DNA of 62,531 nucleotides, filler included, from Choristocarpus tenellus KU-1152 (lineage: Eukaryota; Protista; Phaeophyceae), in NCBI GenBank assembly GCA_964200185.2. It is 9 parts of 9 records of this genome, joined end to end, with 100 filler letters (N's around TTAATTAATTAA, not from the genome) between each part and the next. Parts side by side here need not be neighbours in the genome. Positions count along the whole stretch, not along the records: positions 10,954 to 17,356 come from CAXNAD020008208.1; 8 more parts are not named here. One strand, written 5' to 3'. Under the pieces are notes generated by a model. That model saw nothing but the letters and a program-made list of their open reading frames with translations, was not told where the DNA came from and made no database searches. This document shows, in pieces, positions 10,854 through 17,456 of the stretch. Within the stretch, counting starts at the first letter, position 1. The number at the start of each line of letters is the position of its first letter. Both the position numbers and the translations under genes were made by a program.

Positions 10854-11507
10854 NNNNNNNNNNNNNNNNNNNNNNNNNNNNNNNNNNNNNNNNNNNNTTA
10901 ATTAATTAANNNNNNNNNNNNNNNNNNNNNNNNNNNNNNNNNNNNNNNNNNNNGGTTGTGGAGGATCATCCCCTGCTTATAATATACAAGACGAAGGGGG
11001 GGGGGCGCCCTCTCACGGGCACTGACAAGTATCTCAGATGTTGTCAGGACATGATTCTTCTCGCGCACAACAGTGGGACAGAGTTCACATGCAACAAGCG
11101 AGTCACGATTCATCTCCTGTTGTACTCCAAACCATGTGTGACGTCGAATACCAAGGTGCTGCAATGGACATCCCCATGAGGGCCCTCCACTTCCTCGTTA
11201 ACAGGTTCGTTAATAATGTCACACACACCCTTCTTCACGGTAGCAGGGACCTTTTTTGTACAGGTGTAGAACATCGTTAAACAGTAACACAACAAGCTGG
11301 GTGACGATTCAGGGGCGTCAAACCATACCACGAGTGACCTTCCACAAATCAGTATGTTAAGCAAGTCTCGGTATATTTTACTCTTTTGTCAGGATTTCGT
11401 TTGAAGAATCTTAATGATTTGGAGTCTTCAACATGTTTGAGAGATGTATTTGGCATTGAGGTGCCAGAAATTCTGTTGGCCTGACACTATTGTGATGTTG
11501 AGAAACT

Positions 11508-12400
11508 CTAGTATCGTCCTGGAAGGTCGCTATCATCCTCATGTGGAAATATCCTAACCCTTTCCCCATCAGCCATCAGTAAAACCAGGTTCATCCACAC
11601 ATAATATCGAGTTCGCCATGGAAGCCTACACACCACGTTTCCGGTCCACTTGATCGCAAACAAAGTCCATTCTCCATACCTTTTGCCACGATTTAAGCTT
11701 GGGCTTATCCAGCGGCGATTCAGCATGGCCCCCATATCATCTAACCACTTGTTTACACATAATGTTTACACATAATATCGAGTTCGCCATGGAGGCATAC
11801 ACACCACATTTCCGGTCCACTTGATTGCAAACAAAGTCCATTCTCCATACCTTTTGCCACGATTTAAGCTTGGGTTTATCCAGCGGCGATTCAGCATAGC
11901 CCCCATATCATCTAACCACTTGTTTACACATTACACATAATATCGAGTTCGCCATAGAGGCATACAAAGTCCATTCTCCACACCTTTTGCCACGATTTAA
12001 GCTTGGGTTAATCCAGCAGCAATCCAGCATAGCCCCCATATCATCTAACCATTTGTTTATGGTGCTCATGCTATAATTCAGCCCCTTGGCAACCATCTTC
12101 TTTGTCACCTGACGGACTATGGATGACCGATTATCGGAGCTAATACTATATGTTGCGGCCATCTTAGTGGGTGTGAGCTCCGAAGGCCGCCCACTACGTG
12201 CCGCCACCCCTAGGTCAAGCGTGTGGCCACAGTCAAGCTAATGGGCGACATCCTCCCAGAGCCCTCACATGTAACGCTTAGACACTCCAAACTCCGCTGC
12301 AAGGGCTGGCCCAACGTGTCGCGGCAGTTTATGCTCACAAGGGATCATCGCAAGGGTGTGCCGCACTGCAAGCGCAACCCTGGTATTCAGGGACACTTGG
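11508..12400 (-). mobile_element. Decayed mariner-like transposase relic with an internal ~170-bp triplication
   Basis: Homologous to 58380-59220 (RSGRPSELTPTK, KGLNYSMSTINKWLDDMGA, MADGERVRIFPHEDDSDLPG). The segment 11598-12060 consists of three copies of one unit; frameshifts are present. Confidence 0.75.
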
Positions 12401-13264
12401 GTACCCTTCCTTCGCAGGGGGGTCGATGGGGGGGTTGCCATGCCAACGTTCTCACCCTTGACGTGCCCAGTCTTGGTCTCAAAATCACCCCAAAAGACCC
12501 CTACTTTGACGGCTTGAAGCTCGAGTTTGTACCCGATGATCCTCGACCCCCACCTTTTCTGAAAACTGAGATTGTCAACCCGATTTCGATCTGTGGGGTT
12601 AACGTCCAATTCGGTGCTATTCTTGCTTGGCGAGCCCATATGTTTCACGGCACAAACTTATGGCACAGAGGTAGTAGTAACTTCAAAATAACTGTATGAC
12701 CAAGGCGCCCTCCAAGCTAGAATTACGGATACCAATATGATACTTCTGGCAGGCTGTGAAAGAAGGGGGGGTGTACTGTAAACGAGTCAATGGCAATACT
12801 ACTGTGCATGGCAAACTATCAGTGTAGTATTTTGTCTGTGCCCAGCACCTTTGGATCACTGGGCACAAGGAGGACATGGTGCTGGAGGTTCTTGGGTACA
12901 ATTCATGTTAGGATGAGCCAGGGTGGGGGTTGTGCAATGTAGTTCAATGCTACAGAGCAATGTGCAGTGCTCAGCAATACTACTTATCCCTTCTGGGGGT
13001 CTGGTGCTCCATATTCCTAGAGCATGAGGCTCCTTGGTATGACCCAACTAAGCGAAAATATATTCATTGGGATCTGATGTCTTACACATTCATACAAAGT
13101 GGCTGGCAGGGTGTTCAGAACATTTTTTTTTAAGTGGGTCAGACCTGGCAGCCAATATAGAAAAAACAAACTCTGAACCATCCATTCAATAGCCCTTGGA
13201 AAAAATGTGGACAATAGGTAGGTGAAATATAAACTATTCAAAGCTTTGCCTCTAGCAAAACTAC

Positions 13265-16200
13265 TCAATCAGGCCACACTCTACCTATGAAGTCTTTCTT
13301 GCTTTCCATACTGGGGTACACTTTCCAAAGTTTAATACAGTCATCAAGAAGTTGCCCAAGGTTACGGTAGGTCTCTGTAGTCCCTTCCACTACCATGTAA
13401 CAAACCTTTGGTTCTACGTGTATCAAGGAGTGCTGCACAAAATTGGATACACAGGTTCTCGCTTGTACTGTTGGTGTCTTCTGTGCCTGGCATTGATTAT
13501 TTGATGCAGAGTTCCAAAGTTAAGAGGTTTACAAAAAAAATTAGAAACATATCACATCAAAAAGGATGCAGGTAAAAAATGAACCAGTTTGGTGCCCATA
13601 CTGAGGACACGCAAATTAGGAAAGAGCCAATGTGAATGAGTGGTAGAGACACAATTGACAGGATGATACTGGGAAAATAGCAACATTGTAGGAGGATCTA
13701 TAACAGTTGCGGAGCCTTAATGAAGCAAGGGCAATCAATGTTGCACAAATGTTAGCAGAAAAATATTCACTATTCGGCCCCATCCCATACAGCACCTTGT
13801 CGGTGAAGCTCAACACCAGGACACCTGGTTTGGTCTCACTGAAGCGTAGCAAGAAGGTTCCACTATCCTGGTCCAGGAGCAAGCGCTCAGCCTTATACCG
13901 CCCCACAAAACCAAAGATAGCATGAGAGCTCCACTCATGTTGCAGAAGCAGGAGCGTGGAAACTAGAGGTCCCCACCACTTGGAGAACTCCACATATGCT
14001 CCCAGGCTCTCAAGGCCGTTGCCATTCCTCTCCAACATGTTCTGGACAAATATAAGGTCATCTTCATTCATCCCACGCGGCTGCCCCAGAATTTGTCCGT
14101 AGCCATATTCCTGATGGTTGACCAAATTCCCCAGTTCACCTCCACACCCCTGTAAACCATATGACCCCTCTACCTCCACAACTGCGGCTGTGCTGGGTAT
14201 GGTCAAGGTTCTACAGAGGTGGTGCTGAAGTTGCTTTGAGAGGTTATCCCACAATGCCCGATCACACTGGTCATCCTCCTTCCCCCCACCCCCATGAATC
14301 ACAGCACCTACCCATGCCAGGAGGCAACCTTTGTCCTGTATTCCTTCTCTACATGCCACTTCCCACACACGTTTTCCTGCTGAACTCATGGATAATGGCG
14401 GCTCCACAACACGAAACTCCGCAGCACCCGATCCCACCCACGATCTGGTATCACTTCTGTCCCCCTGCAGATCCCCCAGCGTTGATAATGCCGAAGGCAT
14501 GTTGCTGTTGGTAATCGAGCTAGGAGGGTGTGATAAGCTGGATAAACAATTTCCAGGGGATACGTTTGGACAAAACCCAAGCAACAACCTGGATAGTGAC
14601 AAGTGATAAGGGGAGCACAAGGTGAAGGGCCAAATTAATTCCAGTACAATTATAGGGTAGTGTCACGTTATACATCAGCACAAACAATCAAGCCTGGGTA
14701 CCTGCTGCTTGGCTTCAACCATCATCCTACTGGTTGATTGTTGCATAGAACCATGGTAGGGTATTATTACCCATACCATCACAACCTCTCATCTAATTCA
14801 AAATCTCTCCATACATCTTTACGAAATTAATGTGTGAGTCAACAAGCCGTAGACGTAAGTGGACATTTGGAAAGTCAATTTCATCAATGTCACTGCTTCC
14901 ATCTACACCCCATACCACCCAATTCCCCCCCCAACCCCCATTCGACACCTATGATTCAATGCTCCATGCCCCTACCATCTTCTACCAACTTTACCAAAAA
15001 TGACCATAACACGTAAGTACGTTCTGCATTCCCTGTATCTATCCAGTTCATTTCCCCTCGTCCAACTCACATCTCAGCCAAATCTTCACAATTAGAGAGC
15101 CCACGATCGTAGAGGCAGGGCGCTAGTTGCTTCATTGTTCCAGGGTGACCTCTAGCATTTAACAGGACCTTGTGGTTGGCCAGAGCATTAAGAACTTCGT
15201 TGTGGGGGGCTTTATTTTCCAAACCCAACTCCGAGTATGTAAAGTCTCGCGGCATGTGATCCAATAGAAACTGTGCTGAGTGCATTCTGGTCAACGGTTC
15301 AACTCGTAGGACCTGGGAGACATGGAGGTGGGCAAGGTATTACTCTATGAGTGTGAAAACCTACAGAGTGTAACGTAGGCCTTCACTGAGAGATCCACAG
15401 CAAGGAGGGGGGGGGGGAAACCTGCTGCTGCCTTGGGGCGACATAGAAAGTCGTCATAGTTGCAAAGCTTAGCAAGCGGTATCTTACCCTCAAACTAAAA
15501 GTGGTATCAATAAAAAGTTGTAGGTGGTCACTCATTGATTACCTCACATGCAAAAAATATATATTATAGAGAAGTATAAAAATATTACTAGGATTACTTT
15601 GGGGTGTACTGGCAATGAGAAAAAATTGGCGTGTGAGACACTGTACCACAACAGTTTCCATAGAAAACGCGGAAGAGACAATGCTCGATTTCTGTTTTGT
15701 TGTTAGGAAAACATCATAAAACGGAACGATTCTGCACCATTGCTCAAGGCTGCCCCTTCAACAAGAGCTCCTGCATTCAAGACTCATTTTCATAGTGTCC
15801 TAAGTGGCCATTGGTCCTCGCACATCACCTTTCATTTCATTGCTATTGAATAACAATATATACTACGTAACATACATACACCATGGTACATATATCGTCC
15901 TGTTCTGCATCTACACAAGCCCAAACATCGTGAAGGCAGTGAAGAATAGGGGGATTCACACACAATATCACCGTCATGACTGACAGTACAATCCCTTGCC
16001 ACTGCAGTTACTAAGGGTCATCCACATTGACAGAAAAGGTCGAACTGAACACAACTTGGCAACATATTGTTCCAAAACATTCAAAAAGGACCCAACATTC
16101 ACAAAATTAAAAGTCAACATTTCATATTCCCATTAGGCAATAAATGAAACCCCTCTTGTTGACAAGAGCAGCCCCCCAAGGTCTTGATACTGTGACCACA

Positions 16201-17267
16201 GGATCAACATCAAAAACAACTCAACTTATATGCCCCTGCCTTCATGCTCTGAGCCTTGATGAAGCATATCAAGCCTACCATACCCAAAACTCATCTCCAA
16301 CAAGAACAATAAATTATTTCCCAGATCAATTCATTCGATCAATCCCTTTTTTTTCCCGTCACCAATACAATTTTTTTCCCCTTTTTTTTCTAACCACCAG
16401 CAAAGTACACAACCACAGAGCAACAGTCCTTGAATATGCACATGAAGGTGGACAGGGAGGAGAGAGACAAAGAGTCAGGAGCAACATAAAACGCAACAAG
16501 GGGCAAACCTCACTATTGCACATGTGTGCAGCCAGGCTGATACCACAACAGAGGCTTTGGTGAAATGGGAAACACATAATATGTTTAAAGTAGTGTTAAT
16601 TATGCAGAAAAAGGTGTGTATATATATATTGTTCATACACAAAAACAGGGTCCCATGGTATCTATCCCATCACTTGAATGCAGCCTTGTGCGAAAATGCT
16701 GACTGTAGGAATCTCTTCTTCATTCAAGAGGTTTCCCCTTACCCTCTCAGAGCCAACCTGGAATAACTCCTTGGTGCCTATCAGGACACGCTCCTTGCTT
16801 GTGAGAAGCAGGTGCAGCCTATTGTTTTTGGAGCACAGACTGCTCAGCACCTGCACCAAAGAGTCCCTAGCTGCCCCTCTCCGCCCGTGTCCCTCAAACA
16901 GAGAGTCTACCCCGTCGATAGCAAGGAGGACCTGGAATATTAGTATTAACAATTATCACATTACCATCATACCCATCAACACAGTGGAAAAGGGGTATGA
17001 TGGACATGGGAGCATTTGGGTTAGACATCTGGGGGGCGTAATTCTAGAAAAGTGAAAAAAAAAACAGGAAGAATAATCCTAAGGAGCACAGCATCAGACA
17101 GGAAAGTCAGCACATCACAAATAAGAAAAACATTTCAGTGCGCGTTGACTTACCTTGCCATCGATTGGAGTGTTCTTGCCTTGGTCAGAAGGAACTGTGA
17201 AGAGGTGTGCAAGGAGATCATCTATTTTTGATGGGACTCGGTCTGTCATTCCCACAGCAAGTCCTAA
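13265..17267 (-). CDS. STAND/NB-ARC-like NTPase - STAT linker - SH2 fusion protein, 5'-partial (exons 17267-17154, 16931-16743, 15312-15071, 14588-13796, 13486-13265)
   Basis: Five AG/GT-bounded exons join in frame (phases 0,0,2,0) and end in TGA at 13265-13267. NTPase motifs: Walker B VLLAIDGVD, sensor-like HLLLTSK, RNBS-C-like VLRVEPLT..SAQFL, GxP motif ARGHPGT. STAT-linker-like motifs: WDNLSKQLQHHL, RGMNEDDLIFV, FSKWWGPL. SH2: W..HAIFGFVGRYKAERLLLDQDSGTFLLRFSETKPG...VQHSLIHV...YRNLGQLLDDCIKLWKVYP..SKKDF. Confidence 0.85.
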
Positions 17268-17456
17268 CTGCAGAGGAGGACATGCACATGCGAAGGATGA
17301 GTACAACAGGAATTACATGAACAGGTTCCAGGTTGAAGGGTTTGAAGGGAGGGGGGNNNNNNNNNNNNNNNNNNNNNNNNNNNNNNNNNNNNNNNNNNNN
17401 TTAATTAATTAANNNNNNNNNNNNNNNNNNNNNNNNNNNNNNNNNNNNNNNNNNNN

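Follow-up and report, generated by a model that had tools for sequence, protein, structure and literature searches.

The part of the window analysed here (positions 10954-17356 of its 62,531 joined nucleotides) is one entire contig of 6403 bp, CAXNAD020008208.1, from Choristocarpus tenellus. On its minus strand lies a gene of five GT-AG exons, which together give 1557 nt, or 519 in-frame codons, without stops or frameshifts. These codons are predicted to specify part of an NTPase, a low-complexity spacer, a STAT-type linker and an SH2 domain, in that order. An earlier note on this DNA had proposed that five exons splice in frame into a single protein in which an NLR-type STAND NTPase is fused to a linker-SH2 module, and it had guessed at a stramenopile origin. 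C. tenellus is a brown alga, which is a stramenopile, and both the open frames and the canonical exon borders bear out the splicing. The data suggest that these 519 codons are the 3' part of a single C. tenellus gene, and that this gene belongs to a stramenopile family with the domain order CHAT, STAND NTPase, spacer, linker and SH2. We consider this reading, with the SH2 domain as a sensor for its working model, to be likely.

The first exon, E0 (17267-17154), has 38 codons (LGLAVGM to PIDGK) and lies between the acceptor ctctgcag and the donor gtaagt. E1 (16931-16743) has 63 codons, with the acceptor attccag and the donor gtaagg. E2 (15312-15071) has 80 codons plus 2 nt, with the acceptor ctcccag and the donor gtgagt, and E3 (14588-13796) has 1 nt plus 264 codons, with the acceptor tatccag and the donor gtgctg. 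The codon that is split between them takes two bases from the end of E2 and its third, G14588, from E3. The last exon, E4 (13486-13268; acceptor atgccag), adds 73 codons and is followed by the stop codon at 13267-13265. An alternative acceptor for this exon at 13432, which is also in frame, was rejected because neither the public gene model nor the Discosporangium relative P0010 uses it; both of them back the acceptor at 13486. The 89 bases that separate E0 from the contig edge at 17356 are rich in pyrimidines and resemble an intron. Because the contig ends within this intron-like sequence, the 5' end of the gene is missing. The exon joins rest on the genomic splice sites, the public gene model and homology to relatives. 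For the searches, E0, E1 and E2 were used singly and E2 to E4 were studied through the public model, rather than as a joined five-exon protein.

An exhaustive HMMER search with E3 recovered this public model, P0001 (CAM9661584.1, an 'unnamed protein product' of C. tenellus), which has 409 residues and is 100% identical over all 264 residues of the exon. It joins E2, E3 and E4 at the same junctions, including the one from 15071 to 14588 that the earlier note had singled out for confirmation. The model starts at an internal methionine (ATG 15285), so that it contains neither E0 nor E1 and lacks nine codons at the start of E2. If this deposited start were correct, the SH2 gene would begin at 15285, and the NTPase-like exons upstream would be a separate gene or a decayed remnant. 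However, ATG 15285 is inside a conserved domain, in the lid of the NTPase, and the first nine residues of E2 (VLRVEPLTR) align to the family before that methionine. Every frame is open and every splice site canonical, and a contig that ends inside a gene leads a gene caller to just such a truncated start.

The order of the exons on relatives also argues against two genes. In BLASTP, E1 aligns to residues 2-62 (4e-12) and E2 to residues 66-145 (9e-12) of Hapterophycus P0016, a protein that runs on into a linker-SH2. On a profile built from nine brown-algal NTPase modules, E0 lies at 109-139 (12.4 bits), E1 at 145-206 (49.5 bits) and E2 at 208-290 (66.1 bits); 500 shuffles of E0 scored at most 1.4 bits on the same profile. 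On Discosporangium mesarthrocarpum P0203, the closest relative recovered, E0 falls at 337-372, E1 at 382-444 and E2 at 445-513, so that E1 and E2 are contiguous to the residue; identity is 47% for E0 and 53% for E1. Additionally, the whole of P0001 is collinear with the C-terminal half of complete proteins from Ectocarpus, Nemacystus, Scytosiphon and metagenomes. We regard two separate genes as very improbable. The deposited C. tenellus model is too short, and 110 codons can be added at its 5' side.

In the C-terminal part of the protein, the Pfam SH2 model (cut-off 21 bits) matches E3 alone at 1.9e-8 (34.7 bits) and P0001 at residues 297-382 at 5.6e-10 (39.6 bits). The N-terminal half of the domain (13927-13796) forms the end of E3 and contains the motif GTFLLRFSE with Arg320 (codon 13846-13844), and the C-terminal half is E4, which ends in a STAT-like L..YP....K.F motif. 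Arg320 and Ser322 are invariant in an alignment of 46 family sequences. The phosphotyrosine pocket, with the beta-B5 arginine in FLxRxS, is intact in the sequence.

The SH2 domain is preceded by an all-helical region, approximately residues 133-292 of P0001 (14407-13928), which includes WDNLSKQLQHHL, PRGMNEDDLIF and FSKWW. Pfam does not recognize this region (there is no EF-hand_12 or Cbl_N2 match on P0001), so its assignment as a STAT-type linker rests on profile matches to solved structures and on an AlphaFold2 model. E3 alone finds its best solved relatives in Dictyostelium STATa (9.2e-7), whose alignment extends upstream of the SH2 domain, and in STAT5B (1.4e-6). With a profile of the 46 family sequences, STATa (PDB 1UUR) is reached at 1.4e-18 and STAT2, STAT6, STAT5, STAT1 and STAT3 at 1e-17 to 1e-13, with other SH2 proteins ranked below. 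The 1UUR alignment spans the region from the linker 'PRxL' helix to the C-terminal LYPxxPKxxAF-type motif, and the motif at the end of E4 aligns with the LYPRIPRDEAF region of STAT2.

The AlphaFold2 model of P0001 has a mean predicted local distance difference test (pLDDT) score of 79. It shows a helical part at approximately 133-292, with a disordered loop at 204-237, and an SH2 domain at approximately 293-409. When the model was searched with Foldseek, the top 22 matches were all STATs, over 266-285 aligned columns. VIA-align superposed residues 133-409 on residues 450-692 of STATa with a Z-score of 18.6 (root mean square deviation 3.2, 193 residues) and on STAT6, STAT5, STAT1, STAT2 and STAT3 at Z-scores of 14-18; isolated SH2 domains reached approximately 12.5 over about 95 residues. 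Judged by these sequence profiles and the predicted fold, the C-terminal module is a STAT-type linker-SH2 unit, and the proposal that the gene carries one stands on all three lines: the Pfam SH2 match, the STATa profile match and the structural superposition.

The closest STAT is thus Dictyostelium STATa, and STATs share with the window protein the linker and SH2 unit, the GTFLLRFSE pocket and the LYPxxxKxxAF-like motif. They differ in that the window protein lacks the STAT N-terminal domain, the coiled coil, the Ig-like DNA-binding domain and the tail tyrosine, and has an NTPase upstream instead. The idea of a STAT transcription factor was rejected because the Ig-like DNA-binding domain is missing. 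The coiled coil is absent too, Pfam finds no STAT domain, and an NTPase and a spacer lie upstream. The spacer is the start of E3 (14588-14408), between the NTPase and the linker. It is of low complexity and predicted to be disordered, with pLDDT below 50 at residues 79-124 of P0001 and no conservation in the alignment.

The three upstream exons form the NTPase part. E0 is the segment between Walker A and Walker B. E1 holds the Walker B strand VLLAIDGVD and a sensor-1-like strand, LHLLLTSK, and E2 holds the VLRVEPL strand and a helical lid with the GHPGT...LAP helix, which is GxP- or GLPL-like. The motifs quoted in the earlier note were all found in the minus-strand sequence at the positions it gave. 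In the family alignment VLLAIDGVD, LHLLLTSK, the VxxVxPL strand and GHPGTMKQLAP (GHPxxxxxLAP) fall in family columns and in profile order. Residues 1-75 of the P0001 model, the end of the NTPase, are helical, with pLDDT of 81-94 over residues 1-70, and the models show only one or two helices between the GxP helix and the disordered spacer.

The assignment of these exons to the STAND class goes through relatives, since it is the relatives and not the window exons that pass the Pfam thresholds. The NTPase part of the relatives matches the Pfam models NACHT, AAA_16, AAA_22, nSTAND and NB-ARC. The gathering score of NACHT is passed by P0019 (41.0 bits), P0084 (36.2 bits), P0185 (34.2 bits) and P0207 (28.9 bits), and P0019 just passes that of NB-ARC (23.6 bits against a cut-off of 23.5). 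The brown-algal members are very divergent and reach only AAA_16 and AAA_22. A profile built from non-brown, NACHT-positive members only still matches the exons across 16931-15071 in order, E1 at 17.7 bits and E2 at 43.1 bits. The AlphaFold2 model of the P0019 NTPase module has a pLDDT of 77.8, and its top Foldseek matches are the plant NLRs NRC2, NRC3, NRC4 and ZAR1, together with Apaf-1 and CED-4 (2e-8 to 1e-5). Taken together, transitive homology and architecture give good support to the view that the window exons encode the latter half of a STAND NTPase. The earlier note had called this NTPase STAND-like, and the exons are clearly homologous to modules that pass Pfam NACHT and NB-ARC; its term 'NLR-type' holds for a STAND switch in the broad sense and fails in the strict sense, as Pfam finds no leucine-rich repeat (LRR) matches.

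Full-length relatives show the order CHAT, P-loop STAND NTPase, linker and SH2. The brown-algal members come from Ectocarpus siliculosus and other Ectocarpus species, Scytosiphon, Nemacystus, Hapterophycus and Discosporangium. Further members come from the oomycetes Aphanomyces euteiches and A. cochlioides, from Paraphysomonas and from many unnamed proteins derived from metagenomes or the SRA. The His/Cys catalytic dyad of CHAT is kept in approximately 20 of 23 members. Walker A reads GEPGVGKT in P0019 and GERGVGKT in Discosporangium P0203, and in this last protein a single model unites CHAT, the P-loop, the equivalents of E0, E1 and E2 and the first part of the linker. In C. tenellus itself Walker A probably lies beyond the contig end, and a search for the missing 5' half of the gene turned up only the Discosporangium counterpart. 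By comparison with the relatives, the CHAT domain of this gene probably also lies beyond the contig end, and the suggestion that the missing N-terminus is CHAT or caspase-like fits with the CHAT domains that these proteins carry.

The fusion occurs in two further settings. The MMETSP transcript P0185, from the chrysophyte Paraphysomonas, has a single open reading frame (ORF) of 3078 nt with CHAT, NACHT and SH2, and P0084 is an intron-less CHAT-NACHT-SH2 ORF of 944 residues on a 145-kb metagenomic contig (ENA ERZ25071330, L001 3001-5835). Because a transcript and an intron-less ORF carry the same fusion, it is no artefact of gene prediction. The architecture is real and conserved, and the family is deposited but apparently undescribed. 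Its members had been expected under generic names, and E. siliculosus P0166 (1080 residues) and P0170 (1000 residues) are indeed deposited as 'SH2 domain containing protein'. A full-text literature search, whose scope did not take in the SH2 survey of Liu et al. (2011), found no description of a CHAT/STAND/SH2 protein. The C. tenellus gene is a truncated member of this existing family and, being of the STAND/NLR-like kind, is not categorically new.

Within the family the order of NTPase, spacer, linker and SH2 is the same in the Ectocarpus, Scytosiphon, Nemacystus, Hapterophycus and Discosporangium relatives. The window protein is approximately 28-36% identical to those of Ectocarpus and approximately 50% identical to that of Discosporangium over E0 to E2. 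It differs from its relatives in being cut at the contig end, in its short spacer and in the lack of a C-terminal tail, whereas the relatives are full length with CHAT and a P-loop.

We also considered whether the locus is a non-functional fragment or pseudogene copy that lies beside transposon remains, on a contig that is short and rich in repeats. At only 6.4 kb the contig is indeed short, the 5' part of the gene is absent, and a 171-bp tandem repeat and fragments of helix-turn-helix (HTH)-like ORFs lie 1.3 kb downstream. Yet 519 codons over five exons are free of stops and frameshifts. The Walker B aspartate, the sensor strand, the GxP helix, Arg320 and Ser322 and the STAT-like C-terminal motif are all retained, and the P0001 model folds confidently. 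A decayed copy is thus unlikely, though less so than two separate genes, and we continue with a single gene of the CHAT-STAND-SH2 family.

STAND and NLR switches sense ligands through repeat domains, such as LRR, WD40 and tetratricopeptide repeats (TPR). Apaf-1, CED-4 and the NLRs of plants and animals share with the family the P-loop NTPase (seen in the relatives), the Walker B motif hhhhDG.D, the sensor strand and the GxP lid helix. They are also alike in having an N-terminal effector and a C-terminal module that is presumed to be regulatory. They differ in that the family lacks LRR, WD40 and TPR and its effector is a fused CHAT protease, not a CARD, TIR or CC adaptor. The SH2 domain was said in the earlier note to sit at the C-terminal sensor position, and it has the same placement in the full-length relatives. 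If it does act there as a sensor, the input logic would be a different one, in that the switch would read a post-translational mark.

A working model can be drawn by analogy with STAND proteins in which a C-terminus senses and autoinhibits and an N-terminal effector is activated by proximity. The C-terminal linker-SH2 would take the role that LRR, WD40 or TPR sensors have in other STAND proteins, and its ligand would be a phosphotyrosine motif carried either by a partner or by a second copy of the protein. Binding may then release or promote nucleotide-dependent oligomerization of the NTPase. Oligomerization would gather and activate the N-terminal CHAT proteases and so lead to proteolytic signalling or a cell-death output.

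Several observations weigh against the CHAT-STAND-SH2 reading or its working model. Neither CHAT nor Walker A is present on the window contig. The Pfam NACHT match on E1 (E 0.013, profile positions 83-133) is sub-threshold, at 15.8 bits against a cut-off of 26.7. In the VIA comparison of the P0019 NTPase the NLRs, Apaf-1 and CED-4 tie with ORC, Cdc6 and TnsC (Z-scores of 14-16); because STAND proteins and AAA+ proteins of the ORC/Cdc6 type score alike, the fold alone is no proof of STAND. The NTPase-module profile is likewise unspecific against solved structures, where SRP54, Clp and plant NLRs are all weak matches. No clear winged helix with an MHD-type histidine was seen after the GxP helix, either in the alignment or in the P0001 and P0019 models, and a comparison of tails found no tyrosine in the eight residues after the SH2 domain. 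Finally, all mechanistic steps beyond domain identity, including switching by tyrosine phosphorylation, are inferred by analogy. Two further searches gave nothing: Pfam had no match in E0, E2 or E4 searched singly, and E1 alone matched no solved structure.

The absence of a tail tyrosine also counts against a different role for the SH2 domain, in which it would be no sensor but a STAT-like device for dimerization or recruitment, and the NTPase would be regulated by something else. A phosphotyrosine on the protein or on a receptor would then let the SH2 domain bring copies together in trans or tether the complex to a membrane receptor. STAT SH2 domains act by reciprocal phosphotyrosine-SH2 pairing, but the window protein stops eight residues past the SH2 domain. 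Three Ectocarpus proteins, P0155, P0165 and P0168, do share the tail motif GNGYALG approximately 30 residues after the SH2 domain, at the STAT-like tyrosine position. Tyr235 (codon 14101-14099), in the motif YG...PRGMN of the disordered linker loop, is a possible phospho-acceptor in the window protein itself. Of 29 aligned sequences, 14 retain this tyrosine; these 14 make up a single brown-algal subclade, to which the window gene belongs, and the residue is not kept across the family. A sibling in which CHAT and NACHT are joined to a protein kinase, P0207, also speaks for this role. On balance we find the dimerization or recruitment role possible but rather doubtful, and we keep the SH2 sensor as the working model.

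The kinase-bearing sibling P0207 (1002 residues, ENA metagenome) was recovered because it is related to the N-terminal half of family members. It has CHAT at 14-188, NACHT/nSTAND1 at 242-447 and a PK_Tyr_Ser-Thr kinase at 744-986; the CHAT and NACHT-type scaffold is the same and the C-terminal kinase stands in place of the linker-SH2. It may possibly be a 'writer' counterpart on the same scaffold.

A more ambitious interpretation, which we offer only tentatively, is that the family is a machine of stramenopiles, shared by brown algae, chrysophytes and oomycetes, that resembles an apoptosome or inflammasome. In it a STAT-type SH2 domain would control an NTPase of the STAND class that is joined to CHAT, a caspase-like protease. 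Were this true, phosphotyrosine signalling would be directly coupled to regulated proteolysis or cell death, and the kinase-bearing siblings on the same scaffold might be the writers. It would also be an independent, non-animal wiring of phosphotyrosine signalling into switches of the innate-immunity type, in a lineage where this signalling is, to our knowledge, essentially unstudied. The STAT-type linker-SH2 unit is regarded as the oldest form of SH2, and the family extends it to a new context in stramenopiles.

Complex multicellularity evolved independently in brown algae, and we know of no receptors or executioners identified for their cell death. Pathogens trigger local cell death in these algae (PMC12396294). 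A conserved protein that combines a caspase-like protease with an NTPase and an SH2 domain is a concrete candidate for a part in this process, and one that can be tested in Ectocarpus. Candidate immune receptors of brown algae are the NB-ARC-TPR and LRR-ROCO proteins (Zambounis et al., 2012, PMC3341825; Phaeoexplorer preprint, 10.1101/2024.02.19.579948). These are likewise brown-algal STAND or GTPase switches, and they differ from the present family in the NTPase family and in the C-terminal module. The words CHAT and SH2 are absent from both publications.

Other proteins were recovered with weaker linker-SH2 matches. In P0062, P0065, P0067, P0068, P0081, P0083, P0098 and P0112 an EF-hand of the Cbl_N2 type precedes a pair of SH2 domains, and in P0072 an SH2 domain is found together with STATa_Ig, a kinase and EF-hand_12. 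These proteins are further non-animal settings of an EF-hand-like linker with SH2. On its metagenomic contig, the P0084 ORF sits among closely spaced genes and adjoins a CLC channel gene.

The tandem repeat downstream of the C. tenellus gene occupies 11597-11966, with 2.2 copies of the 171-bp unit at 93% matches and a further, diverged copy up to approximately 12100. Minus-strand ORFs in this region repeat the sequence MGAMLNRRWI.PSLNRGKRYGEWTLF..., and a neighbouring ORF (11908-12207) has a weak match to HTH_29 (E 0.028). The repeat and the HTH-like ORFs, approximately 1.3 kb downstream of the gene, look like the debris of a decayed transposon or of an HTH gene.

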